Made by a program: the position numbers and the translations under genes. A DNA stretch of 64,000 nucleotides, taken from positions 171,364 to 235,363 of the IMG/VR virus record IMGVR_UViG_3300009370_001221; one strand, written 5' to 3'. Shown piece by piece: positions 17,922-51,089 of the stretch. The first letter of the stretch is position 1. Each line of letters opens with the position of its first letter. Below the pieces are notes generated by a model that was not told where the DNA came from, searched no databases, and saw only the letters and a list, made by a program, of their open reading frames with translations.

Positions 17922-18601
17922 TCCTCTATGTGGTATACATAATCTCTATTAAACGGATCGGGCATACGCCGCCTCCACAATGCTTCTGCTAATGTATAGT
18001 CATTGCCTCCTTCTTCCATTCTGTCACCAAAGAATGTGATAGGAGTATTGTCAAAATCACGTAGTATTTGTGACTTATCCATACCAAGTTGTGCTATGTC
18101 TAAACCAGTCTCACCACCAACTGTTGCATATACTTCTTCAAACTGTTTATTAAACTGGTCCGCAATGCGATATCTTTCACGGGTTCGTTTATCATATTTG
18201 ACATACTCTCTGCGTTCTTCACTGTTCGCATTGCGTCCTACTATGCTAAAGTTAAGCATACCTGTGCGGTATTCAAAATGATTGCCAGTGCGTAACGGAA
18301 AATTACTAACTGCTAGGTGTGCCGACAACCATTTCTCTTGCTCATCAGTTATCCTAAACTCATTATGCCATACTTCTACACCATTTTCCCATACACTACT
18401 ACCTGAGCAGTTATAGCATCGCTTAATAGCATTGATTATATCCTCTCCTACTTGTTCTAGTGTTTTAGGATAGTCACTACCAGTAACTAAATGTACTTCG
18501 TGGCTTAAACAAAAGTCTATAAACCACTTTTCAAACGTGGGGTCAATTTTACTCCTGCTAGGAGTTAATGTTCCATCTACATCAAAAATAAATGCTCTCA
18601 T
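17876..18601 (-). CDS. HAD-IIB hydrolase, phosphomannomutase-like
   Basis: FDVDGTLTP, LVTGSD, N.S..GR, FFGDR...GGNDY. Confidence 0.85.
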   Translation of the reverse strand: MRAFIFDVDGTLTPSRSKIDPTFEKWFIDFCLSHEVHLVTGSDYPKTLEQVGEDIINAIKRCYNCSGSSVWENGVEVWHNEFRITDEQEKWLSAHLAVSNFPLRTGNHFEYRTGMLNFSIVGRNANSEERREYVKYDKRTRERYRIADQFNKQFEEVYATVGGETGLDIAQLGMDKSQILRDFDNTPITFFGDRMEEGGNDYTLAEALWRRRMPDPFNRDYVYHIEDWEHTWRTLENLTKS

Positions 18602-19863
18602 GTGAATAACCTATCAAATTGTGTTTGTGTATTTTCATTTGAAGAACTATAAACCCATATAGGCTCTACAAAACAGTCCTGCATATGCTCTTTGTCTCCG
18701 CCTTCCTCATTTTTCGGACGTTGTTTCATCCGCATACCAATTACTTCTTGTAATGGCATATCAAGTGTTTCCATATATTTCGTCATGGGATCACATACTC
18801 TATGCCGTTTGTTTTTAATATTTGCGTCTATAATATTTACCGCTATTACTCCAGTATTAGGATTTATTACTTTATTAATACGATCCAATGTCTCAAACAA
18901 ATAGTCGCTTAACCAATCATAAAAGTCATCATACTTAACCCAACTCTGATTTTCCTCTGCAATACCCTCGGCATATCGCTCCGTGCAAAAATATGGAGGA
19001 CTAGTAAATGCTAAATCATAATTTAATTGTGGCCAATTCATCGTTTCACTGGCTCTGAGATATATTAGTACCTCTTTACTGCCTGAAAAGTGGAAGTAGT
19101 CATCACCTATTTGGTTTGACCAAGTATTGCCTAATGCTTCTTCATAAAATATACATTGAGACATATAATTTTGGAATGTTTGCGGATTTGGATCACATCC
19201 AACATAAGTGTGAGCATTGCTTGCCCAAAACCCAGCAAGCCTATCTCCCCAACCGCAACTGCTGTCTAATATTGTTTTAGCATTAAACCTGTTGTAAACA
19301 TACTTTGCTACACTAGGTTTAAATTGTGTAGCAACATACGCACCGAGTCTAAATGCCTCTCGCCACTTTGTTTCATCAACATACTTGACCATACCTTCAC
19401 GCCAAAATGTCCAATTAAATTTGCGTAGTTTTTCCTCGTCGTTCCATACTGCTATTGGACTGGGGTCTTTCCATCCATTACATTGCAGTCTGTTTTCCTG
19501 ATGGAAATAGTTACTGATATCGTTATAGTAATGACCTAAATCAACTACATCCTTACAGTATTGTTGTACCGAGTAGTCATAATCGTTAAACTTATCCGTA
19601 ATATCTGTAGTGTATCCATATAGGAATTTATTGTGGTCACTGCTTCTTAATTTCAGAAATTTATCCGTAACTGTTTGTTCTGTTATTTGTTGTAATGGAA
19701 ATGGTACTTCTTTCTCCACAATATATTTGGCAAGAGCGTCTATCGCTTCGCTCTTCTCAAATTTACTCTTAAAGTCTTTCCACTCGTCCGCAGAAAAAAC
19801 GGGCAACCCACTAGGGGTCGCCCGCTCCTCCAATACCGATCTTGCGCCGGTTTCTTTTACCAT
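18598..19863 (-). CDS. amino-DNA methyltransferase (N4C/N6A type, orphan)
   Basis: LDSSCGWGDRL (SAM-binding motif) and TSPPYF (catalytic motif). Confidence 0.75.
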   Translation of the reverse strand: MVKETGARSVLEERATPSGLPVFSADEWKDFKSKFEKSEAIDALAKYIVEKEVPFPLQQITEQTVTDKFLKLRSSDHNKFLYGYTTDITDKFNDYDYSVQQYCKDVVDLGHYYNDISNYFHQENRLQCNGWKDPSPIAVWNDEEKLRKFNWTFWREGMVKYVDETKWREAFRLGAYVATQFKPSVAKYVYNRFNAKTILDSSCGWGDRLAGFWASNAHTYVGCDPNPQTFQNYMSQCIFYEEALGNTWSNQIGDDYFHFSGSKEVLIYLRASETMNWPQLNYDLAFTSPPYFCTERYAEGIAEENQSWVKYDDFYDWLSDYLFETLDRINKVINPNTGVIAVNIIDANIKNKRHRVCDPMTKYMETLDMPLQEVIGMRMKQRPKNEEGGDKEHMQDCFVEPIWVYSSSNENTQTQFDRLFT

Positions 19864-21950: not shown

Positions 21951-21964
21951 TTCCTTAACCTCGT

Positions 21965-22183: not shown

Positions 22184-22203
22184 TACTTTACACTCAATTT
22201 GGT

Positions 22204-23493: not shown

Positions 23494-23522
23494 ATGTCTA
23501 TATTACCATTTAATATACTTAT

Positions 23523-23578
23523 ATTATAGCATTTATCTGCTAATCTGTCACGGAAAATAGTGCTGTAAGTGCTTGAAT
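23523..23578 (-). promoter_or_regulatory. sigma70-like promoter (GTGACA-17-TATAAT, extended -10) with upstream ATTCAAGCACTTA box
   Basis: motifs read on minus strand upstream of the VWA gene. Confidence 0.6.
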
Positions 23579-23630: not shown

Positions 23631-24758
23631 CTATGCCTCCATTGCCGAAATGACGTATTTTCCAAACCGCTTGTGGAACTCATCAAACGACTTGAGTTTA
23701 CCAGGCACTAGCGGCAGGTTGTAGTTCGTAAGGGCCATTTTCGCGCCCATTACCGTCACCTCTGTAAGGAAGTTATCCATCATGAAACGGAAGAAGTTGT
23801 CGCACATTGCATGCCATTCCTTACCAGGATTCTGCTTCTTGGCCTTCTTGTAGGAATCACGCAACTCGTAACACATCGAGATGGTTAGCGAGTACATTGC
23901 AGACACTTCTTTCACTTCAAGTTTGGTCACCGTGCCGTCAAGTATATCTGACGGGTTGGGCAATTTGCCTGAATGCTTTCGGTGAGCGTTAAACTTGACA
24001 GCCAGGCCTTCACCAACCGTACCAGCAACCAAGTCTGTGATTTCGCTCTCCGTCATATCCGGATCGCCATCTTCTTCCTGAAGTAACTCACTCACAAACA
24101 CCCAGGATCGCGGTGTGGCAAACGAGCGTTCGTTGCTACCCGCATCAAAATTGTAGAGATCGTTCTTTGAGAAGGTCAGGTAACCCAACACATCGGGATG
24201 AATCTGATGTTCAACTGCCCACTCCTGCCACGTATCAAAATCTGCGGACACTTCAACATGGACGAAACGGTTTGCCAACGGGGAGGGCATTCTGTAAGTG
24301 ACGCCACGGTCAGTCTCACGGTTCCCTGCCGCTACGATAACACAGTTATCGGGCAATTTGTAAGTACCAATTCGTCCGTTGAGCACCAACTGATAAGCGG
24401 CGGCCTGAGTTGCCATCGGAGCAGAGTTTAACTCGTCCAAAAACAATATGACGATGTCGTGTTCTGCGGCCTGTTCCGCTGTGGGAAGATCCACAGGGTG
24501 TGCCCAGGACATTGTATTCGCGGCCTGGTTGTAATACGGAATACCACGCAAGTCGGTGGGTTCCATCAAAGCCATACGCAGGTCGATAAGCCAACCATTC
24601 TTAAAAGAGCCAGTAATCTGCTCCATAAGGTCACTCTTACCAATGCCTGGCGGCCCCCATACAAATATTGGTCGCTTCCGCTTCATTGCGCGGCGGATTG
24701 ACTTCTCCGCTCCACGCAGGGTGACGGTGCGAACTTCGGCTTGTGCTGATTGTGCCAT
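23631..24758 (-). CDS. MoxR-type AAA+ ATPase
   Basis: GPPGIGKS Walker A, LFLDE Walker B, AAGNR, PLANRF, TPRSW. Confidence 0.9.
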   Translation of the reverse strand: MAQSAQAEVRTVTLRGAEKSIRRAMKRKRPIFVWGPPGIGKSDLMEQITGSFKNGWLIDLRMALMEPTDLRGIPYYNQAANTMSWAHPVDLPTAEQAAEHDIVILFLDELNSAPMATQAAAYQLVLNGRIGTYKLPDNCVIVAAGNRETDRGVTYRMPSPLANRFVHVEVSADFDTWQEWAVEHQIHPDVLGYLTFSKNDLYNFDAGSNERSFATPRSWVFVSELLQEEDGDPDMTESEITDLVAGTVGEGLAVKFNAHRKHSGKLPNPSDILDGTVTKLEVKEVSAMYSLTISMCYELRDSYKKAKKQNPGKEWHAMCDNFFRFMMDNFLTEVTVMGAKMALTNYNLPLVPGKLKSFDEFHKRFGKYVISAMEA

Positions 24759-36566: not shown

Positions 36567-36823
36567 TATTGTATTACCGTGCCATCTTTTTGTTTAATTG
36601 CTACTGCCATTTCAATTCCTTCTGGAGTTAATTCGACATAATCTTCATACATTTCTTCTGAAATATCAGAAGAATCAACACCAAATAGTAGTAATAATGA
36701 ACCAACTGATATCTCAGTTATGCCTTCATTTCTGCATTCCAATAGAACTTTTAACATAAGTTCTTCTATTTTTGGATCATTTTGTTTTACGGGCAAGTTG
36801 CTTAAATATTCTGGTATGTCCAT
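36566..36823 (-). CDS. hypothetical protein
   Basis: ORF in operon. Confidence 0.6.
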   Translation of the reverse strand: MDIPEYLSNLPVKQNDPKIEELMLKVLLECRNEGITEISVGSLLLLFGVDSSDISEEMYEDYVELTPEGIEMAVAIKQKDGTVIQ

Positions 36824-37662
36824 TATGTTCCCCAGGCGTTTCCAAATAAATCGGAATGTAGTCTTGGACTGTATTTAAGTCCGTATTTCATTGCTAGATC
36901 TGCAACGTAGCGTGAATTAAAGGAATAATCTTCGTAGCATCCGCCTACTGGCATTACATATACTGGACAATTTACTCCAGCACTTCTGTATGCCTCTACA
37001 GCCTCCAGCACTTCATTAATACCCTCTTCATTATCTATCACGAATTTAAAATACATATCTGATTTTTGAACGGCAGAATATTCTTTTGCTACGTCTGGTT
37101 TAATAGCATCCGACCATATTTCGCCACTTGCTGATAGTTTAGGACTACAAGACCAAGTTATCCATGGCCTGTCAGTACCAGCAAAAAAGTCATTCCATCG
37201 TAATTCTTGTGTTGTATTTGTCTCAAATGTCATGTGCTTTAAACTACTCATTCTTGGATGCTTTAATAATGGCTCATATATACGTTGCCATAACATAGGT
37301 TCACCGCCTGTTACAACTAAATGTATTTCTTCCCATTGATTGCGCGGTGTTATATCTAATAAATCTGTTACTACGCCGTCTATGTCAGTTGTTGTAGCAA
37401 ATCGTTTAAAACGCGGATCCCAACTAGCATAACTATCACAACCTGTTTTAACTAATGGTAATCCATCCATTGCGGTATAATCATCTGGATCAACCCACAA
37501 CCGCTCTTCACTTACCTGCCGTTGTCCAGCACTAACCTCTGGCATTCCAAAGCCTTGGCATTTGAAGTTACAACCAAATAAACGTAGGAATACACTTGGT
37601 GTTCCTACCCATCTACCTTCGCCTTGTAGGCTGTAGAATATTTCAGTATATCTAACTTTCAT
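36823..37662 (-). CDS. queE: 7-carboxy-7-deazaguanine synthase (radical SAM)
   Basis: EIFYSLQGEG..VG.PSVFLR..GCNF.C...GCDS, TGGEP, ETN, SPKL, SPRLH..LFGN. Confidence 0.92.
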   Translation of the reverse strand: MKVRYTEIFYSLQGEGRWVGTPSVFLRLFGCNFKCQGFGMPEVSAGQRQVSEERLWVDPDDYTAMDGLPLVKTGCDSYASWDPRFKRFATTTDIDGVVTDLLDITPRNQWEEIHLVVTGGEPMLWQRIYEPLLKHPRMSSLKHMTFETNTTQELRWNDFFAGTDRPWITWSCSPKLSASGEIWSDAIKPDVAKEYSAVQKSDMYFKFVIDNEEGINEVLEAVEAYRSAGVNCPVYVMPVGGCYEDYSFNSRYVADLAMKYGLKYSPRLHSDLFGNAWGT

Positions 37663-37912: not shown

Positions 37913-39056
37913 AACTTTCTATTCCGCCTTCTCTGTGTATGTCCAATGTTAGGCAATGTAGTCCACCATCCCAAAAGAATCTATGTCTAAACGGTGCTAC
38001 TATAGGTTCTATATTGTGTGATCTAAACCATTTAAATAAGTCTTTATTTTCTGTTAAGCATAATACTGTTTCAGGATTTATTACTAATACGTTTACGTCC
38101 CATACTGTTTCCTCACAAAAACCTACCCAATCACTAAACCAGTTATCCACAAAACTAATAAGATCATCATTATGTTCCTCACCAGGAATCCACCATTTAC
38201 CTCTTACCTTGTCTCTAACTTCTAAAAATGGTGACATATTAGACCACTGTGCATCAGGCAAATAATATACGTCCCAACTAGGAAAGTATTTTTTAAAATT
38301 TAATGCTTCTCCGTTACTAATCCAAACGCCAGGTTTAATTGGATTATATATACCATCACTATGTCCATCATTGAAAGCAGTTATTATAGTATAATCTTTT
38401 AATTGCTTTTTAAAATAGTTATAGATATCTATTGGTAACCCATCTAATATTATAGTGTCTCCAAGTCTAACAATACTAGGAGCATCGTTACTATTTCCAA
38501 ATGGAAGATCATCTATAATATTTCCATCGTATTTGTGTAGTTTATTAAATAATGGTTCTAGTGCCGCTATCGTTGCTGGGAAATCTCCGTGATCCTTGCG
38601 TACATCTTTTCTTGTAAGCCTGTATATTGAATCTTTAATAACAATTTGTTCATCTCTTACCATGAGTGGAGGACGAGTTAAGTCACCTGGAAATTCATGT
38701 ATATTGTAATTGTCTAGATATTCTGTAACACCATTTATATCTTTAAATTTAGGCCATTTTTGTAATACTAAATCTCTACGCACTTCCAAGTTATCATCTA
38801 AACATTCTCGCCCTACTTTGTATACATTATACATATTTTCAAAGTCAAATACTTTAGGTCGATTGACTTTTACATTGTACTTCTCTAGTATTTCTCGTAT
38901 GTTCTCTAAATCTTCTATAGTTTCTTCTGTTATTTGTCGCAGAACATTTCTAACACTATTATTTTCTATATAATCAAAAAAGTCAGGACGATAACAATCA
39001 CCAAGCCAACATTCAACTAATGGCTGAAATCCTGTGTTGCAATTTATTACAGCCAA
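37902..39056 (-). CDS. amidinotransferase (pentein superfamily, glycine/inosamine-phosphate amidinotransferase-like)
   Basis: L...V.V.RP, RD..IVI, HSDG, NVL.I, FWDGGLHCLTLD. Confidence 0.8.
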   Translation of the reverse strand: MAVINCNTGFQPLVECWLGDCYRPDFFDYIENNSVRNVLRQITEETIEDLENIREILEKYNVKVNRPKVFDFENMYNVYKVGRECLDDNLEVRRDLVLQKWPKFKDINGVTEYLDNYNIHEFPGDLTRPPLMVRDEQIVIKDSIYRLTRKDVRKDHGDFPATIAALEPLFNKLHKYDGNIIDDLPFGNSNDAPSIVRLGDTIILDGLPIDIYNYFKKQLKDYTIITAFNDGHSDGIYNPIKPGVWISNGEALNFKKYFPSWDVYYLPDAQWSNMSPFLEVRDKVRGKWWIPGEEHNDDLISFVDNWFSDWVGFCEETVWDVNVLVINPETVLCLTENKDLFKWFRSHNIEPIVAPFRHRFFWDGGLHCLTLDIHREGGIESYAR

Positions 39057-39523
39057 CCTTTAAAGCCAGCATCAGGGTTAGTATAAATGGAACTATTCTT
39101 ATCATTTTCTCTAGACTCTACACTAATAACCCATGCTCGTCCTCTTGTACGTTCCCGCAACCATTCATCTGCCCACATACAAATACGCATAGCAGTTCCT
39201 TCCATACCTGGTCCTTCTTCTTGTACAATTAATTTACATACACCCGCATCGTGCATTGCTTGAAATGTTTCCATCCACGGATCATCATGATCAACTACAA
39301 ATGTATGATCATAATTTTCTTCTAACCATTGTTTTACTCCATCCAAGTCACCATAATCAACAAGGAATCCTTCCTTTGTCATTGTCTGTGCGCCAAATAC
39401 AAAGTGAAAACTACGACTATAACCGTGTATTAAATGGCAATTGCCATCGTGTTTGTGCTGTCTATGAGCACACGGAAAGTTCCAAAAACTTTTCGTTGAT
39501 GTAAATTCTGGTACGTCACTCAT
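39047..39523 (-). CDS. queD: 6-carboxy-5,6,7,8-tetrahydropterin synthase
   Basis: CAHR...HDGNCHLIHGY, VDYG, DH, E.T...I, E..KNS. Confidence 0.88.
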   Translation of the reverse strand: MSDVPEFTSTKSFWNFPCAHRQHKHDGNCHLIHGYSRSFHFVFGAQTMTKEGFLVDYGDLDGVKQWLEENYDHTFVVDHDDPWMETFQAMHDAGVCKLIVQEEGPGMEGTAMRICMWADEWLRERTRGRAWVISVESRENDKNSSIYTNPDAGFKGWL

Positions 39524-39532: not shown

Positions 39533-39901
39533 CTAATCTATAATTACCATTCTACATAACCAAACTGGTTCATTTTTCTCTGTGTCCCAATGCGAATATT
39601 CTGCAGAGTCAGAATCTGTCCCGCACGTTTTATCTAACCACTGTCTAACTGTTAATCCCTCTTTACAAGCATGGCAAGATGGTATTAATGCGGCACAACA
39701 GTATCGCCCATCTCCATCTGATGGTGGTACAACCTCATCAATTGGCTCACATTGCTCACCAGTGAGTGTATCCATTCCAAGTACTCCCCAACATGCTTTG
39801 CCTTTTTCTGTCTCACCCCTATCACAACCTGCCAAATCAAAGCATAATAGTATCATTACTACCATGCCCAATATATACTGTGTTCTTTGCTTCATTACCA
39901 A
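39533..39901 (-). CDS. Cys-rich lipoprotein
   Basis: lipobox LAGC after a hydrophobic segment. Confidence 0.65.
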   Translation of the reverse strand: MVMKQRTQYILGMVVMILLCFDLAGCDRGETEKGKACWGVLGMDTLTGEQCEPIDEVVPPSDGDGRYCCAALIPSCHACKEGLTVRQWLDKTCGTDSDSAEYSHWDTEKNEPVWLCRMVIID

Positions 39902-40434
39902 TTCCTATTATACCACCAACATTCCCATGGAAATACGACCCACGATGGATCTTCTGTTTTGTTAATTTCACGAGCATTGAATGCTATGTCTTTAAACTCA
40001 CTGCCCGCGTTATTAAACAATACAGCAAATCTGATATTACGTTTCCATAATGCTTTGTTTTCATCAGGCATATGATATCCCTTCCCATAATGATGAAATA
40101 AATGTGGCTCTATAGTATTTTCCCAATCATTTACCATCCATTTGAAAGTTGCGCCAGTGTCATTAATATCATCTATGATAAGAATCTGTTTGCCTTCTAA
40201 TGCATCCAATGGTATTTCAGAATTAGATTCTTGTTGTACATTATCACGTAACCTAACATCTTGTATAACCATAGGACGATTGAGATAGTGACTTAACATT
40301 ACAGCAGGCAACATACCGCCTCGTGGTATGCCTACTATATAATCAGGCACCCAATTGTCTGCGTTCATTTGATGGCAAATGTCTAATACATACGATTTGA
40401 CATCTTGTGTATTAACATCTATCATTTTTGTCAT
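39895..40434 (-). CDS. type I phosphoribosyltransferase (purine PRT-like)
   Basis: VGIPRGG..PA..LSH, ILIIDDINDTGAT, WVVFPWE. Confidence 0.88.
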   Translation of the reverse strand: MTKMIDVNTQDVKSYVLDICHQMNADNWVPDYIVGIPRGGMLPAVMLSHYLNRPMVIQDVRLRDNVQQESNSEIPLDALEGKQILIIDDINDTGATFKWMVNDWENTIEPHLFHHYGKGYHMPDENKALWKRNIRFAVLFNNAGSEFKDIAFNAREINKTEDPSWVVFPWECWWYNRNW

Positions 40435-40817: not shown

Positions 40818-40997
40818 TTACCCCTCTTCCCAATGGCGATAATAAAAATGTTTACCAAGGGCATCTATTTCCTGTTGAGGATAACCATTCTCAACAAGCC
40901 ATTTTTTTACATCCTCTACACCTTCTGGTAACGGTTTAGGAAATCCATATCTCCAACCAGAAGGAGGATCAATCATTTTAATCTTCTTTTTTGTCAT
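40818..40997 (-). CDS. small hypothetical protein (MTKKKIKMIDPPSGWRYGFPK...)
   Basis: 59-aa ORF with ATGA overlap on the folE stop. Confidence 0.65.
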   Translation of the reverse strand: MTKKKIKMIDPPSGWRYGFPKPLPEGVEDVKKWLVENGYPQQEIDALGKHFYYRHWEEG

Positions 40998-41674
40998 GAT
41001 TTGTGTACTAACTGCATAAACTCTGCTCTATGTGCCGAGTCTGTTTTGTATCGTCCACCTAATTTACTTGTGATAGTATATGAACCTGTGTCCTCTACAC
41101 CTCTATGCTTAACACAGAAGTGAGCGGCGTCAATTACCACAGCAACCTCTTCAGTATCTAAAATAAAACTGAGTGCGTGGTAAATTTGTTCTGTTAAACG
41201 TTCTTGTATTTGTGGTCGTTTACTAAAGTATTCTACAATCCTGTTTAATTTGCTTAAACCCAATACTTTGTGTTTCGGAATATATCCTACGTGTGCCTTG
41301 CCATCAATAGCAACTAAATGATGCTCGCAAAAAGAAGATACTTGTATGTTCCTTTCTACAACCATCTCATCGTAGTCTATTTTGTTTGCTACTGCTGTAC
41401 ATTTGGGAAATGCATCTGGACTTAAACCCCAAAATATTTCATTAACATACATTTTAGCAACACGTTTTGGCGTATCCATTAAACTATCGTCTGTTAAATC
41501 CATTCCCACAATCTCAAGAACTTCTTCCATTCTACGTTCGATTGCTTCTATTTTTTCTGTTCTTGAAAGTGTATACAGACTTGAAGTGACAGGCGTTTCA
41601 AGGCCTAACTTTGATAAATGTTCGTGAACTTGCTGACCCAGATGAGAGTCAGTCTTTGTTTTGTTATAACTCAT
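40994..41674 (-). CDS. folE: GTP cyclohydrolase I
   Basis: DTPKRVAKM, SFCEHH, GLSKLNR, RPQIQERLT, H.CV..RG. Confidence 0.96.
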   Translation of the reverse strand: MSYNKTKTDSHLGQQVHEHLSKLGLETPVTSSLYTLSRTEKIEAIERRMEEVLEIVGMDLTDDSLMDTPKRVAKMYVNEIFWGLSPDAFPKCTAVANKIDYDEMVVERNIQVSSFCEHHLVAIDGKAHVGYIPKHKVLGLSKLNRIVEYFSKRPQIQERLTEQIYHALSFILDTEEVAVVIDAAHFCVKHRGVEDTGSYTITSKLGGRYKTDSAHRAEFMQLVHKS

Positions 41675-41731: not shown

Positions 41732-41739
41732 TATTTATA
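41732..41739 (-). promoter_or_regulatory. T4-type late promoter motif TATAAATA upstream of folE
   Basis: exact TATAAATA; also overlaps the stop of the upstream gene. Confidence 0.4.
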
Positions 41740-42817
41740 TTTCTAGAAGCCACGGCGATAAAATATTGTCAAACATAATATCGGCACTTAAGAAATTATG
41801 TGTTAATACTTCTACTTGTTCGTCTAAATATTCCTTTTTTACAATGTCATAGTTGCTACATAGTGTAGTAATAAAGTCTTGTAAATCTTCTTTATGCTCT
41901 TGGTAATTCCCATAACTTTCAGTCCATACACTAGGATATTTGAATACATCCTTATACATTTCACTATAACTTGCTCTATCTGGAACAATAGGAATAGCGC
42001 CTGCTAAACATCCCTCCATCATACTAATACCCAAATTTTCATGTAGAGCACAACTAAACACCGCTTTTGCTTGTCCCATTGTTGCATAATAGTCTTCTTT
42101 ACTTAAATTTAAGTTTTGGGTAATTACAACATTATATGGAGTTAAATCAAGATCTTCTATAATTTCAGGTTGTTTATCTTCATTGTAACGATGCGGCCAC
42201 ATAATAGTATCTCGTTTAGGACTATTATAATATTGTTGCAATTGCTCTACAATAGGATTATGTGGTTGTCCACTGCGTATTGCTTTGCTGTGATATATGT
42301 CAGGTATTTCCAAGTTGTGTAAAAATATATCCTTATGGAAATTAGTTGCATAATAATTATAGTCACATGCCATAAACCATGATTTTTCCTGTAAATGTGG
42401 CCATGGTTTAGACATCTTTAGACCCAATATGTCAGTTGGATCGTATGCGCCTGCATGCCAAATACCGTGTATCTCTACAGGTATGTCAAGCAGTTCGCTC
42501 ATGTATTTGATGGGTGTTACAATGAAGTTCCAAGCGTCAGTAATAAGGAATTTGTCGCCGGGGAGGATGAGACCCTTGCTAAACAATTCGCTTACTCGCG
42601 CGGTTTGGCTAGCCTTGTACTCATTTGTTTTTCCGAAGTCAAGGAACGCACCGCTGGTGGTTTTATCTTCAACAGTAACCCCATCGATAGTTTCAACACA
42701 GTACTCTAAACTGTGTTCTGCTATTTTCTCTTCAAGAAGTGATGGAATATTATCGTACCATTGTTTCGTATAGCGTTGATCTATAGGCTCAATGGGTATA
42801 ATATAAATTGTATTCAT
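41735..42817 (-). CDS. GT-B (GT4-like) glycosyltransferase
   Basis: WPHR...DKQP, ENLGISMME (Ex7E), GAIPIVPDR.SY.E. Confidence 0.8.
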   Translation of the reverse strand: MNTIYIIPIEPIDQRYTKQWYDNIPSLLEEKIAEHSLEYCVETIDGVTVEDKTTSGAFLDFGKTNEYKASQTARVSELFSKGLILPGDKFLITDAWNFIVTPIKYMSELLDIPVEIHGIWHAGAYDPTDILGLKMSKPWPHLQEKSWFMACDYNYYATNFHKDIFLHNLEIPDIYHSKAIRSGQPHNPIVEQLQQYYNSPKRDTIMWPHRYNEDKQPEIIEDLDLTPYNVVITQNLNLSKEDYYATMGQAKAVFSCALHENLGISMMEGCLAGAIPIVPDRASYSEMYKDVFKYPSVWTESYGNYQEHKEDLQDFITTLCSNYDIVKKEYLDEQVEVLTHNFLSADIMFDNILSPWLLEI

Positions 42818-43245
42818 TGGTATAATCTTGTAATATCTTCTTCGTCACACTGGCTACCATATTGTACCTCTATAATGCTTAATTCCTGTCTTGAGGGATT
42901 AATCAATTGATGCCAAGTACCTGCTGGTATGACTAATGTTTCAGTTTCATGTAGTATAACAGTAGTGCTATTATCTTCTATTAAATCTTGCTCTACTTTT
43001 TTACTACCCCGTGGGTAATCTTCACTGAGTATTACCCTTGCTACGCCACTATTAACGCACCAAAATTCTTCTCTGTGTTCATGCTTTTGAAAACTTAAAC
43101 ACATGCTAGGACTAACTACAAGTTCTTTCACTTTAACGCCGTTAAAGTCACCTAAAACTTTATAATGTCCCCATACGCGATATTCTTTTAGAACTTCTTC
43201 AAGAATTTCGGTAATTTTGGCGTTTGCGGTCTCTGTTGTGGTCAT
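42814..43245 (-). CDS. cupin, mannose-6-phosphate isomerase (ManC C-terminal)-like
   Basis: R.WG.Y.VL, L.FQKH.HR.E.W.V..G, IP.G.WH.L.N, IIEVQYG....E.DI.R. Confidence 0.85.
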   Translation of the reverse strand: MTTTETANAKITEILEEVLKEYRVWGHYKVLGDFNGVKVKELVVSPSMCLSFQKHEHREEFWCVNSGVARVILSEDYPRGSKKVEQDLIEDNSTTVILHETETLVIPAGTWHQLINPSRQELSIIEVQYGSQCDEEDITRLYQ

Positions 43246-43420
43246 ATTTCTTATATCCTGGCCAGTAACGTGCTTTGCCTGTGTCCTTCCATTTAAGGAA
43301 ATCATCATAAGGAGTTCTTTCCTTATACATATGTGCTTCGTTAAAAACACGCCCGTAAATTCTACAGAAATCTCGGTACTCATCAAGGTCGTCAAAGACC
43401 TTTTTGACTGCTTCTTTCAT
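43199..43420 (-). CDS. hypothetical protein
   Basis: IF.DL..YRDFCR.YG.VFNE..MY. Confidence 0.65.
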   Translation of the reverse strand: MKEAVKKVFDDLDEYRDFCRIYGRVFNEAHMYKERTPYDDFLKWKDTGKARYWPGYKKYDHNRDRKRQNYRNS

Positions 43421-43425
43421 TGTTG

Positions 43426-43872
43426 TTATTCTGCGGCTAAAGTTATAGGATAGACGCAATGGCAGCCGTTTTCACCATCCTCGCCTACTTCAATCCATAC
43501 TTCTCTATCTGGATATCTGTCATTAATTTCCATATAAAGATCATCAGCAATCATCTCACAAGACTTATAGTCTAATTCCAATGTTGTGCCATACAAACCT
43601 TCCAACCAACGTTTAAATTGAATAAATTCAATATCTCTGTCGTCGTGGAATACTTGTATAGTAACCTTAAAGTGGAATGTGTGGCGATGTGGATATCCGA
43701 GAAAGGATACATCATACTCATCACCAGTTGCTAATGCGGGATCTTCTAATGCGGCCGGGTATTTGTGTATACCCTCTTTTTGAAATTTAACCCAAATCAT
43801 TTTGGGCATTTGTTGAACTTTTTCTGTTCTCAGTTGACGTCTATGATCGTCTATGTTGAATACTTCGTTCAT
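43426..43872 (-). CDS. T-fold QueD paralogue (DpdL-like candidate)
   Basis: LGYPHRHTFHF (LxxxHRHxF), DRDIEFIQFK, SCEM.A, V.EDGENG. Confidence 0.65.
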   Translation of the reverse strand: MNEVFNIDDHRRQLRTEKVQQMPKMIWVKFQKEGIHKYPAALEDPALATGDEYDVSFLGYPHRHTFHFKVTIQVFHDDRDIEFIQFKRWLEGLYGTTLELDYKSCEMIADDLYMEINDRYPDREVWIEVGEDGENGCHCVYPITLAAE

Positions 43873-43874
43873 AA

Positions 43875-44213
43875 TTAACTCGCAGGTTCAGTTGATACGT
43901 GTTCTTCTTTCCCATCTACCCCTTCCCACGATTTGTGGTCGGGCATTGGGTCCTTCTGCTCCGTTATGTTGGGCCATACTTTAGAATATTTGTCGTTGAA
44001 TTCTGCCCAATCAATATTGCCAGTTTGTGTATATTCATTGTCTGGCACAATGGCTTCAATAGGACATTCAGGCTCACAAATGCCACAGTCAATGCATTCG
44101 TCTGGGTGTATAACCAGCATATTTTCGCCTTCGTAGAAACAGTCTACAGGACATACTTCTACACAGTCCGTTAATTTACATTTAACGCAATTTTCGTTAA
44201 CTATATAAGTCAT
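43875..44213 (-). CDS. fdxA: 7Fe ferredoxin (FdxA type)
   Basis: [33 protein letters not shown]. Confidence 0.92.
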
Positions 44214-44248: not shown

Positions 44249-44492
44249 GCAAAGACGAGTGTCCTTTTTTATAATTTATTACTATATTTCCTTGGCCATC
44301 AACGCCGTCCCATGTGAAATCTTCCCCATATATTAGACCTAATGTGCCTAAATGATTACATATCATAGCAACGGCTTCAACGGTTCTATAGTTGGCGTTT
44401 AGTGCGCCGCCTTCTATAGATTTACCCGTTGTTTCGCCTATCCATCTATCACGGACAGTAACACTATTAATTTTGAATTTTCCAATTTCCAT
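44226..44492 (-). CDS. hypothetical protein
   Basis: ORF in operon. Confidence 0.55.
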   Translation of the reverse strand: MEIGKFKINSVTVRDRWIGETTGKSIEGGALNANYRTVEAVAMICNHLGTLGLIYGEDFTWDGVDGQGNIVINYKKGHSSLLDNIKWS

Positions 44493-45130
44493 CAGTATAC
44501 TGATTTAATTTTATCTGCTATTCCATATTTTACTGCTTCTTCAGCATTGAGCCACACGTCTTGCGGTGGTAGTAATACTTCACGAATCTTCTTTTCAGAT
44601 AATCCAGTACATTTCTTATAATGCATTAACATACGTTCTGTACTCATCTCAAATTCTCTTACAACTGCGAACAATTCGTGTTCTTTACCTCTACTGCCCC
44701 AACTATATTGATGACTTAATATGCTAGTATTTGGGGTAATTGTTCTATGACCTTTTTGTCCAGCCATAAATGTTAGTACGCCACAAGAGGCAATCATACC
44801 TAGTCCTACTGTGTGGACAGGGATCGCTGATCCTTTCATACAATCAATTAACGCAAATGCGTGGGCAACCTCACCACCAGGACTATTAATCATTAGTGTG
44901 AGATGTTTTGGTTTAAATTTTGAGGGCAATACATTTTTCTCAAGTATAAATCTAATTGCCATACCACAGGACTCTTCATTAAAGTCAGTCATGAACATAT
45001 GAATATTATTATCATATAGTGGATCACCGCTAGGTTGCGGCCCACGTGGTCGTTGTGGTTTTGGTCCTGCTTCTGTGTCTTTATCTTCTGCTTCTTTCTT
45101 GACTACCTTCTTCTTTTTCTTTACTGCCAT
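44492..45130 (-). CDS. clpP: ClpP-like protease subunit
   Basis: INSPGG.V..AFA.ID.M, G.IASCG, HQ.S.G, D.WL.AEEA..YG..D. Confidence 0.88.
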   Translation of the reverse strand: MAVKKKKKVVKKEAEDKDTEAGPKPQRPRGPQPSGDPLYDNNIHMFMTDFNEESCGMAIRFILEKNVLPSKFKPKHLTLMINSPGGEVAHAFALIDCMKGSAIPVHTVGLGMIASCGVLTFMAGQKGHRTITPNTSILSHQYSWGSRGKEHELFAVVREFEMSTERMLMHYKKCTGLSEKKIREVLLPPQDVWLNAEEAVKYGIADKIKSVY

Positions 45131-45235: not shown

Positions 45236-46714
45236 TTACTCAAACAAGTTATGAAATGATTCCTCTGCACTATATGTTTCTTTGGCCATCACTTCATCCT
45301 TTCCCATTGGTTCTATGCCTAATTCATCTGCATAGGCTTCAGAAGTATTTACCCCTTGGATGCGTGTAAACCATCTACTGTATTTCTCTACTTCAGCAAT
45401 GGCATTAGCATGATCTTTCTTAGAAAATATCTCATGAATTACCTCTGCTATATGAGCGCCATTTGGTGCTACTAATTGTTTAGGCATTATTCCTTGATCA
45501 TAACATTCATTTGCTCGTTGTGTTGCTAAAATATGCAAGTAAACATTGTGTCCCATTTGTAATGCATAACTAAAACTATCCCAACTCGTTCTTCCTTCCT
45601 TGCCTATTTTGTTTAAATCACCTGGTCCATATGGGCAAACGTCTCGCATTTCTATACGCTCACTAATAGGACTGGGTTCCCAATCTCGATCAGGAAACTC
45701 AATATTATAATCAAATATCCTTGTATCTTTAGCATACTTTTTGTCATCTATTGCCTTAAGCATTTTATAAGTCCAACCCTTGCGTAAATGGTCAGTGTGT
45801 ATGCTAGTATACATTGTGCCATATGCTGTTGCTAAAAACGGTGACGCACAATCATAAGACAGTATAATATTTGGGTTTATTTTGTCGTGTATTTCACGTT
45901 GGAATGCTGTTAGTACAATACTCCAAAGCAGTTCACCTGTACCCAAATAATGCATCCATTCTGTCTCACCTAAAAAGCCATCCTCACGCATCTTTAATAG
46001 TCTGCGTATAGCAATTTCTACATCCTTTTTATTAATAGAACTTAATGCCCATCCCTCAAAGTTTGCCTTCTCGCCTGTGCTGTATGGTTTAACTGCCTCA
46101 TACCATTCCTCACATTGTTTCCAATTGTTACCTTGTAATACATTTAGAAACTTTGTCGCACCTGGCTCACGTGCTTGTGCGAAGTAATCATTATTGTTTA
46201 ACGTGCCTTGTAAACACTTTTGCCAAGTATCTAATCCATGTAAGTGTGCATGAGTAACACTAAATGTAGGTAAGTCAAGCACCATAGAGTAATCAAATGT
46301 GCCTTCTAAAAATCGTAATACTTTTTCTCGTATTGCGTCAGTTTTCTTATCAACACCATATGGCTCTAACCACTCTCCCATCCACACGCCTTTAGATATT
46401 TGGAATCCACCACTGTCACCCACTAATACAGTGTCTGGTGCTCTATTGCGGACCATGTCCTCTTTAGCAACAAACTTATCCAAATTCATATCAGCATGTC
46501 CAGCAGAATACAATGCCCAAGGATACTTAAAATATCCTTCTTTAGTGTTAAGGAAATTTAAGCCTTCTATACCACTAGTAAAACGTGATGGAATTCTGTC
46601 TTGAGGTACAAAATCTTCGTATCGTTGTTTGCCTACATACGCGGCATAAAAACTACTAATGGCTGGTAAGTAGATTGCATAATTTCCTTGTGTTTCTACA
46701 AGGTTCTCTCTCAT
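45236..46714 (-). CDS. dpdA: TGT-fold guanine transglycosylase, probably DNA-targeting (DpdA-like)
   Basis: DSGGFQ, VLD.P, VLQG, H.LG, DCASP, HN; clusters with folE/queD/queE and follows the sliding clamp. Confidence 0.8.
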   Translation of the reverse strand: MRENLVETQGNYAIYLPAISSFYAAYVGKQRYEDFVPQDRIPSRFTSGIEGLNFLNTKEGYFKYPWALYSAGHADMNLDKFVAKEDMVRNRAPDTVLVGDSGGFQISKGVWMGEWLEPYGVDKKTDAIREKVLRFLEGTFDYSMVLDLPTFSVTHAHLHGLDTWQKCLQGTLNNNDYFAQAREPGATKFLNVLQGNNWKQCEEWYEAVKPYSTGEKANFEGWALSSINKKDVEIAIRRLLKMREDGFLGETEWMHYLGTGELLWSIVLTAFQREIHDKINPNIILSYDCASPFLATAYGTMYTSIHTDHLRKGWTYKMLKAIDDKKYAKDTRIFDYNIEFPDRDWEPSPISERIEMRDVCPYGPGDLNKIGKEGRTSWDSFSYALQMGHNVYLHILATQRANECYDQGIMPKQLVAPNGAHIAEVIHEIFSKKDHANAIAEVEKYSRWFTRIQGVNTSEAYADELGIEPMGKDEVMAKETYSAEESFHNLFE

Positions 46715-47442
46715 TTACTTTGTGCTGGTAATATATAATTGTATTTTGCCAATCCGCTGTCTACTGATATTTGTAATGCACCTTTATCACTAAATGATAT
46801 TACTTTATCGCCAGTCAAATGTAAAACCTTCAACACTTGCTGTACTGGCCAAGTCCAACCTGTTTTTAATGCACCACTAACACTTGTTTCAAATACAAAT
46901 TGTCCTGCGTGTGTGCTGTGATCTCCAAATTCAAATATTAAGTTCTTTTTATCAGTTTTAACTGTAAATACATCTTCTTCTGAGTTAACTTGTGCTTGAT
47001 AGCCAAAACGCATAATAGATGGGGTGCCTGGTTCAAATTCAATATCCCATTCTACACCCTTAAACTTGACACTTTTAAGTTTGTTTTCTATAATTTCAGC
47101 ATTCATAAACCTGTAATCATTTTGGAAATCACCTGCTTTATTCTCAAAGTGGATGCCTGTTGGAACTACCTCACCATTACGTTCCTGCTGATTAAGTTCT
47201 AACTTCGCATCTTCCTTATACTCGGGAATCTTTAATAGTGTGTCTAGTTTGTTAAGGTTTGGCATACCAAATGTGCCCACAAATGCTGACACTGGGTCGT
47301 GTGTTTCTGCTTGTAACACGACACTCCTATCTTCAGCCATAGACTCTATTAATGTGTCTGTTGTGGTGCCAGTTACCTTAATAATTTCTAAAAAACCTAA
47401 GGCATGTGTGTGACTAATTACATCTGCTAAAATATCTTTCAT
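46711..47442 (-). CDS. gp45: DNA polymerase sliding clamp (gp45-like)
   Basis: size, repeated beta-rich halves, position next to pol; recognised only by overall resemblance. Confidence 0.6.
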   Translation of the reverse strand: MKDILADVISHTHALGFLEIIKVTGTTTDTLIESMAEDRSVVLQAETHDPVSAFVGTFGMPNLNKLDTLLKIPEYKEDAKLELNQQERNGEVVPTGIHFENKAGDFQNDYRFMNAEIIENKLKSVKFKGVEWDIEFEPGTPSIMRFGYQAQVNSEEDVFTVKTDKKNLIFEFGDHSTHAGQFVFETSVSGALKTGWTWPVQQVLKVLHLTGDKVISFSDKGALQISVDSGLAKYNYILPAQSK

Positions 47443-47465
47443 TGATTACTCCTACGTTAAAGTAT

Positions 47466-47494
47466 ATTATATTATAAAATTGATTAATTGTCAA
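47466..47494 (-). promoter_or_regulatory. sigma70-like promoter for the clamp-dpdA operon
   Basis: TTGACA-17-TATAAT, perfect consensus. Confidence 0.75.
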
Positions 47495-47496
47495 GA

Positions 47497-48441
47497 TTAT
47501 GGTGCTGTTACTGATGTTATGTTATGCTGGCCTACTTCCGGTATATCGCCCTCATTAAGAAATCCAACACTTGGAACTCGTTTAATTCCTGGTTGGAATT
47601 TACCAGGTTTTTGAAGTATAACCCAACTCATTCTAAATTGAAAATCTTCTTGTTCCATCATATCAAATCCGTTTTTATTAGCCAGTCCTTCCATTAAGTG
47701 ATTTGTCATATAACAATAATACGAGTCTTCAAATTTTTCAGCAGATTTTTCCATTAAACAGTTAGCATAAGTTAAAAACGCAATGCCGCCAGGACTTAAT
47801 ACTTTATAAATACCTGCCAAATATTTGTCAATCATGTCATACGGTAAGAATTCAAAATGATATAAACTAAACACAAATGAAAATGCTTTTTGAGGAAGAT
47901 AACTAAAATCCATACTATCTTCTAATTGATATACCCGTAATCTACGTTGATATATTGGATTAAAATGCTCTGCAACATGTTGAATCATATTTAAATCAGG
48001 ACCTACAAGATATAATGGATCAAATCCACCCAATTCTTTAGTCCAATAATGAGATCGTGGTCCAATTTCACAACCAGGATATTGAAAATCAACATACTTT
48101 TTTATTTTTGAACAAACGGTTAATTTAAATTCAGGTGTCCAATAGTCATCTTCTATGAGTCGTACATCCATACGTCTTTTATTTTCATAGTTTGCATAAC
48201 TTTGCTTTAGACGTGGAGGCTGTATTTCTTTATTAAATATTTCTTCTAATTTTTTATTAGTATTTGCTATTTCTTCATCAACAAATTTCATACAATGCAC
48301 AAAACTATCTAATGTTAAATGTGAATGTTCTATAACTGTTTGCCTATATAATTCTCTAATAGTATTATAGTTTTCATGTATAGCACTAGTATCAAGTTTA
48401 TCTAATAATTCTCGTTCTCTAATATATTCTAATAAGTTCAT
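47497..48441 (-). CDS. class I SAM-dependent methyltransferase-like protein
   Basis: EIGP motif I-like, F.F.FS...F..L, Y..L.PGG...LTY. Confidence 0.65.
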   Translation of the reverse strand: MNLLEYIRERELLDKLDTSAIHENYNTIRELYRQTVIEHSHLTLDSFVHCMKFVDEEIANTNKKLEEIFNKEIQPPRLKQSYANYENKRRMDVRLIEDDYWTPEFKLTVCSKIKKYVDFQYPGCEIGPRSHYWTKELGGFDPLYLVGPDLNMIQHVAEHFNPIYQRRLRVYQLEDSMDFSYLPQKAFSFVFSLYHFEFLPYDMIDKYLAGIYKVLSPGGIAFLTYANCLMEKSAEKFEDSYYCYMTNHLMEGLANKNGFDMMEQEDFQFRMSWVILQKPGKFQPGIKRVPSVGFLNEGDIPEVGQHNITSVTAP

Positions 48442-51089
48442 AATTCAAATAAATCATCAAATGTACTACGTGAAGTTCCTTGTTTCAGATCCCACTTCAT
48501 AACATTCAATAAATTTCCTATTTTCTTATCGATGATTGTTTCTTCCATAGCGATATGATCAAATGGAAGTCCCTTAAACCATTCTGGCAATCTTGCCTCG
48601 TCAATTGGATATGCTACACTTTTAATACCCATTGGATTTGATTTCAATTTACATACAATAGTTTTAGCACCATCCATTATTTGCATACTATACTTGTCGC
48701 TATTCATATCACGCAAATTGTTCCAATTCATTGCCGCTCTAACATGTCCTGGCATATTTGCTTTACCTTCGCGTTGCTCGCGTTTAGTATACATTGTTAA
48801 ATTATTTACCCTTTTTGGAGTTCCTTTTTCCCATCCTGGCTTGTCGGCAAAGTCAAATTTAAATGCTTTAATTTTCTCTATAACTTCCGCTTCTTGTGCG
48901 TTCGTTAAAACATCTAATAATAATATATTTAGAAAGTCTTGCATAATTACTGGCGTATCTGATCTCTTTAAGTCCATACCCATTGCTTTTACTTTGCCTG
49001 GCCCATCCTGGTCAACACGTTTGCCCTCTAAATCATATATGAGTGTAGCATAACGCTTTTTAGTTATAAACAGTCCGCTACTTGCGACAATCTCACGCCC
49101 ACACTTAATAATCTCTCCCAATTCCATCGTGCAGTTAAAACTCTGTGCCATAAATGCTGGGAATGATTTATTAACTTCCTCTGCTACGTTATCATATAGT
49201 TCAATAACTGATTCTTTATCCCATGGAATGCTTCCTTTTTTAATATCCTCTTTGAGTATATCATATGTTGAGAAATAACAACTATCTGTATCTCCGTATA
49301 TAATAGAATTGCCATCATGCTCATACTCGCCTGTTATAATTTTGTTTATATAACTTGCCATATGTTTTGTAATAGTCCTACCACATAACGTAGTGCTTTG
49401 TCCTAAACGTATGTCAAAGAATCTACAATATGGATTTAATAATGCACCATATAAACTATTTAGATTAATTTTCTTTACAAGTTGTCTTTTATCCCAAAAC
49501 ACAATATCTTTTTGTGTTTTTGCCTTATGCAATTTTGCTTGCATCTCTTTACGTTCAGCATACCACTTTTCCAGAAGTCCTGGAATGATTCCTTTTCTAT
49601 CATTCGTAAACAATGTCCCGTTAGCACTTAATAACAATTTATTGCCATGCTTACCAAATACCATACCATGTATTTCCATTGCTGTTTTAACTTCTTCTTT
49701 ACCATCCTCCCAGTCAATAGTAATCTCTGTGCTAGACTCTCTATTCATTACTGCTTCATACTCTAACGAGCCAAATAATCCTTCCCAGCCATCTGCTTGT
49801 GATTTGCCTGATGCTACGATTTTATTGATATGATTTTGTGTCATTGTAGGACGTAATTGCCCTATGATAGTTTCCGGACCCATGTTTAATGCTCGTATAG
49901 CACTTGGATACAGACTGTTTATATCTACTGAGCCAATCCAATGATGTAATCCTTTTTTAGGTGTTGCAACATACGCACCCGCGGCCGTAACTGTTTTGCT
50001 GTCATCCCTGTCGGGTTTGTTAGGAACTACTAATCCTTGTGCGTGTGCCTCATTAATAATTGCTTGCTCTGTTACTGCTACTGCTCCCATTGTTGTGGGT
50101 AATAGTACAGTGTTTTGATGTGCGAGTTCATTTGCTAAATCAATAAATCTTAGTTTCTCATCTAATCGTACAATAAGCATAACATCCTGCCTGTTATACT
50201 CTATAAACTTCTCAAAGTCTGTGTTATATAATTGATCTAATGTGCCCTCATATGGAACTTTTTTGTCTTGCAACTCATAATCTGCTACAGTGTCTAGACT
50301 GTAACTATGCATTTCATGATATGTATATTTGCGATACAGTTCTAAATAATCTAAATGCACTCTACCTGTTAAATTAAAACTAGTTTGCTCTCCCCCATAT
50401 TTCTCATATGAGAATTTTTTTGGAAATTGATCCCATAAACAAAAACGTCTTGTATCATCTCTGCTTAATACGCGAGTAACTCTATTAACAAGATATGGTA
50501 AGTCATATCCTTCACTGTTCCAGCCAGTTATAATATCACTGTCATCTAATAGGTCTAAGAATGTTTGTAATAATTGTGCTTCGCTATTAAAAACAAATGT
50601 ATTGTCAAAGTGTTTCGCAACGCTTTGTGCTATGTCTTCGTGCATTGTTTTTGGTTTCAATGCTAATGTTACCAACTGCTGTAGTTGACTGAGATATACA
50701 GTAATAGCAGTTATTGGTGCCGTGGGGTCGTTAGGCTCACTAAATCCTTTTTCCGGATCAAAATCTGCTTCAATGTCTACATAGCAAATATTAAGAATAG
50801 GAGAATCGGCGCCAAGATAATTATTAGCAAGACACCTAAAGATCGGATTAATGTCGCTTTCATAGATCTGATTCCTGCTGTTAATTTTGAGTTCTCTATT
50901 GAACTCTTTTTTGTTTTTAGAATAAAACCTGCTAACAGGTCTATCGTGTATAGTTTTATGCTTTCCTTTTATATCGTCAAAATAAAAAACATACTCTACG
51001 GGGTACTGTTTGTATTGACGTTTGCCGTCAATTCGCTCCGCTACGTGGATGCGTTCCTGTTCTTTATCTAGATAAGCATCAATATACAT
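48438..51089 (-). CDS. gp43: family B DNA polymerase (gp43-like)
   Basis: DIE, GWNS..YD, DINSLYPS, K...NSLYG, YGDTDS, KKRY, D.KRSD. Confidence 0.96.
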   Translation of the reverse strand: MYIDAYLDKEQERIHVAERIDGKRQYKQYPVEYVFYFDDIKGKHKTIHDRPVSRFYSKNKKEFNRELKINSRNQIYESDINPIFRCLANNYLGADSPILNICYVDIEADFDPEKGFSEPNDPTAPITAITVYLSQLQQLVTLALKPKTMHEDIAQSVAKHFDNTFVFNSEAQLLQTFLDLLDDSDIITGWNSEGYDLPYLVNRVTRVLSRDDTRRFCLWDQFPKKFSYEKYGGEQTSFNLTGRVHLDYLELYRKYTYHEMHSYSLDTVADYELQDKKVPYEGTLDQLYNTDFEKFIEYNRQDVMLIVRLDEKLRFIDLANELAHQNTVLLPTTMGAVAVTEQAIINEAHAQGLVVPNKPDRDDSKTVTAAGAYVATPKKGLHHWIGSVDINSLYPSAIRALNMGPETIIGQLRPTMTQNHINKIVASGKSQADGWEGLFGSLEYEAVMNRESSTEITIDWEDGKEEVKTAMEIHGMVFGKHGNKLLLSANGTLFTNDRKGIIPGLLEKWYAERKEMQAKLHKAKTQKDIVFWDKRQLVKKINLNSLYGALLNPYCRFFDIRLGQSTTLCGRTITKHMASYINKIITGEYEHDGNSIIYGDTDSCYFSTYDILKEDIKKGSIPWDKESVIELYDNVAEEVNKSFPAFMAQSFNCTMELGEIIKCGREIVASSGLFITKKRYATLIYDLEGKRVDQDGPGKVKAMGMDLKRSDTPVIMQDFLNILLLDVLTNAQEAEVIEKIKAFKFDFADKPGWEKGTPKRVNNLTMYTKREQREGKANMPGHVRAAMNWNNLRDMNSDKYSMQIMDGAKTIVCKLKSNPMGIKSVAYPIDEARLPEWFKGLPFDHIAMEETIIDKKIGNLLNVMKWDLKQGTSRSTFDDLFEL

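Follow-up and report, generated by a model that had tools for sequence, protein, structure and literature searches.

Introduction

In bacteriophage T4, the C-termini of gp43, gp33 and gp55 are interchangeable ligands of gp45 (PMC2988020), and DNMT1 carries a PCNA-binding motif through which methylation follows the replication fork (PMC9690074). For 7-deazaguanine modification of phage DNA, a survey of phage DpdA1-4 and bDpdA has proposed that the base is inserted by post-replicative base exchange (Hutinet et al., 2023, PMC10516641). Here we describe three proteins with one shared C-terminal tail, encoded in the last 64 kb (hereafter the window, to whose numbering positions refer unless stated otherwise) of IMG/VR record IMGVR_UViG_3300009370_001221, a 235,363-bp viral contig with 35.8% G+C and a CheckV completeness of about 67%, whose source is a large marine phage. 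These are a family B DNA polymerase (Pol), a DpdA-like DNA transglycosylase candidate with a tRNA-guanine transglycosylase (TGT) fold, and a 421-aa putative N6/N4-type DNA methyltransferase (MTase). With a probability of about 0.7, we read the tails as copies of a clamp-docking peptide, by which the DpdA-like protein and the MTase would be tethered to the sliding clamp and DNA modification would take place at the fork.

The locus resembles T4 and RB69 in several respects: a flexible linker leads to a short hydrophobic-acidic peptide at the extreme C-terminus, which is the layout of T4 gp55, gp33 and gp43 (PMC2988020), unrelated proteins of one phage have near-identical tails, and the gene for a trimeric PCNA-like clamp lies next to that for a family B polymerase. 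It differs in that the clients are DNA-modifying enzymes, not transcription factors, and in that the first hydrophobic position is F (TFxxLF) where T4 and RB69 have L (LDFL type); no gp33 or gp55 homologue with the tail was found in the 235 kb. DNMT1-PCNA is likewise a case of a DNA methyltransferase with a clamp-binding motif, but the DNMT1 motif is internal/N-terminal on an unrelated C5-MTase, whereas the one described here is a C-terminal Pol mimic on a phage N6/N4 enzyme, and the two are of independent origin.

As in the phages with described DpdA proteins, a TGT-superfamily enzyme is encoded together with FolE, QueD and QueE, and as in DpdA3 phages (PMC10516641), it lies beside polymerase genes with a pathway at the level of 7-carboxy-7-deazaguanine (CDG) and no QueC found. 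At 492 aa, it is larger than DpdA3 of phiST (about 250 aa), and it differs further in that neither PF01702 nor a BLAST comparison with annotated phage DpdAs picked it up and in that it forms a very large metagenomic family of its own. The clamp is mentioned 0 times in the main DpdA survey (PMC10516641). An earlier reading of the window, made from the sequence only, knew of no description of a clamp-tethered DpdA, and our full-text literature search likewise found neither a DpdA nor a phage DNA methyltransferase described as tethered to the clamp. What is new is thus the DNA-modifying clamp clients in a phage; the C-terminal clamp epitope (T4) and the logic of coupled methylation (DNMT1-PCNA) were known.

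Results

Three Proteins End in the Same Peptide

Directly before their stop codons, Pol ends in ...SRSTFDDLFEL (peptide STFDDLFEL at 48441-48467), the DpdA-like protein in ...AEESFHNLFE (ESFHNLFE at 45239-45262) and the MTase in ...QTQFDRLFT (TQFDRLFT at 18601-18624), all on the minus strand and exactly as quoted in the sequence-only reading, which had claimed that the three share an FxxLF end. Written as a pattern, the motif consists of a hydrophilic linker and, at the end of the chain, [ST/Q]-F-x-x-L-F-x. The DpdA-like protein and the MTase are built alike here: a variable linker separates the conserved end of the globular part from the motif at the extreme C-terminus. The AlphaFold2 (AF2) model of the DpdA-like protein (predicted local distance difference test, pLDDT, 83.9) was confident over residues 1-454 and of low confidence over 455-492, with a globular domain (1-454), a disordered linker (455-482) and a short helix bearing the terminal motif (pLDDT below 50 at 455-488). 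In the MTase family, the homologue alignment gave a conserved ...EPIWxFxK end, then a variable linker of 10-15 residues and then the tail; the globular part of the window's own protein ends in ...EPIWVYSS, followed by a short linker and TQFDRLFT.

In a rough gene call of the whole genome (264 genes, 75,369 residues in 235 kb), the pattern F..LF occurred 13 times, and three occurrences lay within 3 residues of a C-terminus against 0.185 expected (Poisson P about 9e-4). When the middle residues had to be polar, four occurrences were left in the genome, three of them terminal against 0.057 expected (P about 3e-5); since the motif was defined after the data had been seen, these P values are indicative only. 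The weight of the argument is on conservation and covariation, and we conclude with high confidence that the three tails are a shared, selected docking motif and not a product of chance.

Other candidate clients were considered. The QueE-like protein ends in ...HSDLFGNAWGT and was rejected as a fourth client, because DLFG is a conserved element of the QueE fold; across homologues, this C-terminal element reads R-[VL]-H-V-x-[LT]-[FW]-G...G-[TR]. The ORFs (open reading frames) at 43175-43657 (...YFNHVF) and 110543-111421 (...AFSLVFGG) in whole-genome coordinates, and those at 1527-2501 (...ISNLWG) and 42814-43395 (...ITRLYQ) of the window, were without family or conservation support and are not claimed.

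The Tails Are Conserved and Covary

Conservation was assessed in 80 IMG/VR loci centred on clamp homologues, comprising about 1,400 non-overlapping ORFs. Of 79 polymerases, 75 carried the Pol-like tail (consensus NTFNxLF[DE]F), as did 21 of 64 DpdA-like proteins by a strict pattern (27 of 64 by a looser one); the remaining ORFs, about 1,270 in number, had only 2 such tails. In a tree built from the globular core of the DpdA-like proteins, the window's clade (100% support) had an aromatic tail in all seven members, and Vibrio phage 2.275.O has a polymerase ending in NNTDLFDW and a DpdA-like protein ending in NNNDLFGW. On the MTase, the tail is kept in homologues at 37-92% identity, beyond the variable linker.

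The MTase tail matches the polymerase tail of its own genome, dialect by dialect. Fifteen viral records held both an MTase homologue (37-67% identity) and a polymerase (26-80% identity), and the pairs found among them include Pol STFDDLFEL with MTase TQFERLFE, Pol NTLENLFG with MTase NTLEQLFGE and ATLEGLFGE, Pol NTLESLFS with MTase ATLEDLME, Pol SSLEDFFA with MTase GTLSNFFE, and Pol NTIDNFFV with MTase NTIEDFL... A polymerase with xLF goes with an L at that position of the MTase in seven of nine genomes, and one with xFF goes with an F in six of six; these counts are not phylogenetically independent, though several distinct dialects are represented.

Two observations concern the polymerase genes of these relatives. 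A gene for a Hef-like homing endonuclease splits the polymerase of PA5oct (PA5oct locus L001:1-4840), and in several marine relatives (L175-L177, L180, L181) the C-terminal part of Pol is a separate ORF of about 375 aa.

Identity of the Clamp, the DpdA-Like Protein and the MTase

The DpdA-like protein, the MTase and the clamp were not recognised by Pfam, NCBIfam or PHROGs, and sequence and profile searches of the PDB were of no help for any of them; since the family libraries were silent, their identities were taken from structure and homologues. The sequence-only reading had called them a TGT/DpdA homologue, a DNA methyltransferase and a clamp, and each of these assignments held. Confidence in the gene identities is high.

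An AF2 model of the 243-aa clamp candidate (pLDDT 71) was compared with the PDB by Foldseek, and the top 50 matches were all PCNA (E 6e-12 to 1e-10, TM 0.56-0.69). The polymerase lies two genes upstream, and this pol-clamp synteny is kept in PA5oct, in Vibrio phage 2.275.O and in the 80 IMG/VR loci. By its modelled fold, the product is with high confidence a two-domain, trimer-type protomer of a PCNA/gp45-type clamp.

The DpdA-like model gave 187 Foldseek matches in the PDB at E<=1e-3, and the top 50 listed were all bacterial or eukaryotic TGT with probability 1.00; its matches in BFVD (viral) and AFDB were TGT/DpdA-like proteins. D100-SGGFQ and F-D288-CASP were invariant across 25-28 homologues, and we take DSGGFQ and FDCASP to be the two TGT catalytic-Asp motifs (acid/base and nucleophile), with D100 and D288 presumably corresponding to D102 and D280 of Z. 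mobilis TGT, an equivalence drawn from knowledge of the motifs rather than from residue-level structural superposition. No Pfam, NCBIfam or PHROG model matched the protein, which leaves it outside PF01702 and the named DpdA subfamilies, and tblastn returned only unannotated homologues, the family being out of BLAST reach from annotated phage DpdAs. For these two reasons it is filed as DpdA-like of unassigned subfamily, not as one of DpdA1-4. The family has more than 6,500 metagenomic matches, none with a Pfam domain, and appears to be an uncatalogued DpdA-like group.

FolE, QueD and QueE are encoded within 10 kb of the dpdA-like gene in the same gene string. Neither QueC nor a canonical TGT was found in the 235 kb of contig examined, and the pathway as seen therefore stops at CDG; since FolE, QueD and QueE are present without QueC, the inserted base is probably derived from CDG. 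The closest cultured relatives of the DpdA-like protein are in PA5oct-like Pseudomonas jumbo phages, Vibrio phage 2.275.O and Sinorhizobium phage Phosso. The PA5oct-like phages and Vibrio phage 2.275.O share the pol-clamp-dpdA-like order with Que genes next door, and QueE, QueF, QueC and FolE lie beside the DpdA-like homologues in PA5oct and Vibrio phage 2.275.O. PA5oct (Wroclawvirus) is 48% identical to the window in Pol, 34% in the clamp and 36% in the DpdA-like protein, with the same gene order; its DNA is resistant to restriction enzymes with G in the site, and modified G is suspected (PMC12191111).

In the MTase family, motif I (D200-x-S-x-G-W-G) and motif IV (T-S-P-P-Y, 287-291) are invariant. 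PF01555 was matched by 19 of 24 aligned homologues (37-81% identical, best E 2e-9), and the window's own protein fell below its threshold. From these motifs and homologues, it is predicted with high confidence to be an N6/N4-type DNA methyltransferase.

The DpdA Tail Is Modelled in the Clamp Pocket

A clamp trimer was modelled with three tails, the DpdA tail being the scored partner, in three runs and three controls. The score between DpdA tail and clamp was 0.63 in all three runs and at best 0.02 in the controls, and fell to 0.01 when the clamp was swapped for an unrelated protein; in a calibration set that contained no chains shorter than 30 residues, 58 of 80 solved complexes and 2 of 110 mismatched pairs attained this mark. 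On the clamp, the modelled contacts fell at residues 39-42, 220-222 and 237-243 and at 125-130, the interdomain connector loop, which the monomer model gives with low confidence; on the DpdA tail they were S486, F487, N489, L490, F491 and E492. The model, which the sequence-only reading had proposed as a check, supports a position of the DpdA tail in the canonical pocket for PCNA-interacting peptides (PIP) and the gp43 peptide, a pocket made up of the clamp's interdomain connector loop and its C-terminus. The score may also reflect the model's memory of PCNA-PIP structures; because PCNA-peptide complexes are well represented among solved structures, a passing score speaks for likeness rather than for binding.

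Gene Layout and Neighbourhood

All genes that bear on the clamp and the tails lie on the minus strand (Table 1), and megablast of the region against GenBank phages gave no match. The dpdA-like gene directly follows the clamp gene behind one perfect TTGACA-17-TATAAT promoter, as had been claimed from the sequence; an AGGAG ribosome-binding site and the clamp ATG lie just downstream of the promoter, and the clamp stop and the dpdA-like start overlap as ATGA (46711-46714). Perfect sites of this kind number three in the window against 0.05 expected. Co-transcription and the stop/start overlap fit a functional pair of clamp and dpdA-like genes. The MTase gene is 27 kb away from them. The methyltransferase-fold gene between pol and clamp shares 4 nt with the polymerase gene, and its product ends in ...NITSVTAP, without the docking tail, and probably stands outside the tethered set.

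Table 1. Positions of the genes and the promoter discussed in the text, in window coordinates.
Feature	Position	Strand	Evidence
Family B DNA polymerase (PolB), 883 aa, T4 gp43-like	48438-51089	-	PF00136 + PF03104; phrog_262 E 1e-195
S-adenosylmethionine (SAM)-dependent methyltransferase-fold protein, 314 aa, between pol and clamp	47497-48441	-	PF13489, PF13649, PF08241
Sigma70-type promoter, perfect TTGACA-17-TATAAT, ahead of the clamp-dpdA pair	47466-47494	-	sequence match
Predicted sliding clamp protomer, 243 aa	46711-47442	-	fold match to PCNA, synteny
TGT-fold DpdA-like DNA transglycosylase candidate, 492 aa	45236-46714	-	fold, motifs, Que neighbours
ClpP homologue, directly downstream of dpdA-like	44492-45130	-	family match
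FolE (GTP cyclohydrolase I), which starts the 7-deazaguanine pathway	40994-41674	-	PF01227 E 5e-64
6-Pyruvoyl-tetrahydropterin synthase family (QueD)	39047-39523	-	PF01242 E 2e-18
QueE-like radical SAM enzyme (7-carboxy-7-deazaguanine synthase)	36823-37662	-	phrog_2076 E 7e-50; NCBIfam QueE models
Putative N6/N4-type DNA methyltransferase, 421 aa	18598-19863	-	motifs; family match to PF01555

The other two perfect promoter sites lie at 47066-47094 on the plus strand, antisense within the clamp gene, and at 53794-53822 on the minus strand. Further genes are interleaved with the Que genes on the minus strand at 33467-34003, 39895-40434, 42814-43395, 43875-44213 and 44492-45130, the types being a PurN-like formyltransferase, comparable to the predicted dPreQ1 formyltransferase DpdN, a phosphoribosyltransferase, a cupin/mannose-6-P-isomerase-like protein, a ferredoxin and the ClpP protease; some of these genes may tailor the deazaguanine base. 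A 360-aa protein at 41735-42817 on the minus strand had no family match and had 37 homologues in the 80 loci, and its homologues lie directly downstream of dpdA-like in PA5oct (EST35_0317) and in Vibrio phage 2.275.O (NVP2275O_469), making it a candidate accessory or modifying enzyme of the pathway.

The 235-kb contig gave 13 radical-SAM matches, an unusually high load for a phage, with runs at 79-84 kb (four) and 162-168 kb (five) of the whole genome; the window copies at 7327-8508 and 55817-57034, both on the plus strand, are one of SPASM type and one of twitch-domain type. A thymidylate-synthase-like gene within 12579-15578 on the minus strand adjoins genes for a nucleotide-sugar epimerase and an aminotransferase, and this group may be a second DNA-modification module, for a pyrimidine or a sugar.

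Discussion

In this study, we concluded that two predicted DNA-modifying enzymes of a large marine phage carry C-terminal copies of the tail of its own polymerase, and that DNA modification is probably recruited to the replication fork. Besides the dependence among the covariation counts and the limits of the complex score given above, several findings weigh against the tethering of both enzymes to the clamp, most of them from the DpdA-like family. The sequence-only reading had looked to conservation of FxxLF tails, which stood for the MTase family and for the window's DpdA-like clade and did not stand for the 37 of 64 DpdA-like homologues in the 80 loci whose tail is acidic (KLDxLE) and differs from that of the polymerase in the same genome. 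Among 176 non-identical DpdA-like homologues, 48 had the aromatic tail and 128 an acidic tail, KL[DE]xLE..[VL]. The globular-core tree requires at least 13 changes of tail class, eight of them forced by well-supported branches, against a mean of 42.6 after shuffling. The DpdA-like protein of PA5oct (PA5oct locus L001:6004-7626) belongs to the acidic group: the Pol tail of this phage is HFDSLFGW, but its DpdA-like protein ends in ...KLTELEQGLDN, not in a Pol mimic. Because of the acidic tails and the repeated flips, Pol-mimic clamp docking is to be seen as optional in the DpdA-like family, not as a general property of it. Furthermore, a search for a clamp loader in the 235 kb of this approximately 67%-complete record returned only generic AAA+ matches, such as the product of 23631-24758 (phrog_1297, 'ATPase'), none of which could be named as the loader.

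The phages CP220 and nt-1, in which modification has been measured, gave no match to the A3 profile or to PF01702. In nt-1, regarded in the literature as 7-deazaguanine-modified, a probable DpdA/TGT-like protein, VPFG_00171, is without a Pol-like tail, which is a further point against a general tether. The polymerase of Vibrio phage nt-1 (HQ317393 230000-247511) ends in ...TLESFFG, and the products of its Que cluster VPFG_00169 and VPFG_00173 (6416-7096 and 10099-10707 of that stretch) end in ...NSLANFF and ...TLENPYFFL. Given these ends and the absence of one on VPFG_00171, the clamp tail may be carried by other enzymes of the pathway in nt-1.

The acidic tail is essentially restricted to the DpdA-like family in the loci examined, is present in about 60-70% of DpdA-like proteins and has changed places with the Pol mimic at least 8-13 times. 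In the window's own genome, a 209-aa ORF at 92750-93379 on the minus strand (whole-genome coordinates) has a similar end, ...TLEDLEEAVKNLNV.

The tails might dock not in the clamp pocket but on another part of the replisome, such as the polymerase, helicase, primase, single-stranded DNA-binding protein or clamp loader, which we consider unlikely. Even in T4 the precise site is debated, since in solution the gp43 tail has been reported to prefer the open gp45 subunit interface, and clamp loaders are competitors for that face (PMC2988020), and the acidic tail on many DpdA-like homologues suggests that this family can use another docking partner. However, the tail of T4-type family B polymerases is an established clamp ligand (PMC2988020), both the DpdA and the MTase tail imitate that of the polymerase encoded in the same genome, and the DpdA tail was modelled in the canonical clamp pocket, with a score of 0.01 for the unrelated protein put in place of the clamp. 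Our confidence that the clamp pocket is the target of the tails is moderately high.

There is also a small chance that only the Pol tail is functional and that the other two are chance look-alikes or recombination remnants of pol-proximal DNA, given that the motif is short, with three fixed hydrophobic positions, and was chosen post hoc, and that the tail class of the DpdA-like family is evolutionarily labile. Against this stand the three terminal cases among 13 F..LF occurrences where 0.19 were expected, the persistence of the MTase tail at 37-92% identity beyond a variable linker and its covariation with Pol, and the near-absence of the tail from about 1,270 neighbouring ORFs together with its presence in 7/7 of the window's DpdA-like clade. 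The shared tail could also be a degron or regulatory tag that sets the lifetime of the three enzymes, for instance through the ClpP homologue encoded immediately downstream of dpdA-like; degrons in the form of hydrophobic tags at the C-terminus are known. We hold this to be very improbable, as the motif is the same kind of hydrophobic-acidic peptide as in gp43-gp45 docking and is found on the polymerase, for which the function of the tail is established in the T4 family, as ClpP is not kept beside the homologues in PA5oct and Vibrio phage 2.275.O, and as only two ClpP homologues occurred in the 80 loci, where the tail is widespread.

For the tethering of both enzymes to the clamp, a plausible course can be proposed. 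The polymerase tail would bind the clamp for processivity, as gp43 of T4 and RB69 does on gp45. The DpdA-like transglycosylase and the N6/N4 MTase would have acquired tails that mimic that of Pol, and each could therefore occupy a free protomer pocket of the trimeric clamp, as on a tool belt used by several proteins simultaneously; alternatively, either enzyme may be seated on clamps left behind on newly made DNA. Tethered in this way, the enzymes would ride the fresh duplex right behind the fork, where G would be exchanged for a 7-deazaguanine base and the DNA methylated, with the benefit that nascent DNA would be protected fast and completely from host nucleases. Such a tether is compatible with post-replicative insertion (PMC10516641) and specifies its place as the fresh duplex behind the fork or the clamps left behind, and the kinetics of modification would be coupled to replication.

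More tentatively, and with some doubt on our part, the two tail classes may belong to a swappable 'address code' of C-terminal peptides by which phage replisomes recruit DNA-modification enzymes, the Pol mimic directing them to the clamp and the acidic KLDxLE tail to a second replisome hub, in which case the clamp tether would let post-replicative base exchange come near full coverage of the genome.

To the question of how an exchange enzyme reaches 30-100% of all G within a few minutes of infection, a clamp tether offers a testable answer, in that the enzyme would scan the new duplex in one dimension directly behind the polymerase. The MTase result is broader, with a Pol-mimic tail that is conserved and covaries across many marine T4-like and jumbo-phage contigs, and the MTase tether would be a prokaryotic-virus counterpart of DNMT1-PCNA coupling, independently evolved. 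Furthermore, as a simple sequence signature, the tail could be used to predict phage clamp clients and to separate DNA-acting from tRNA-acting TGT homologues.

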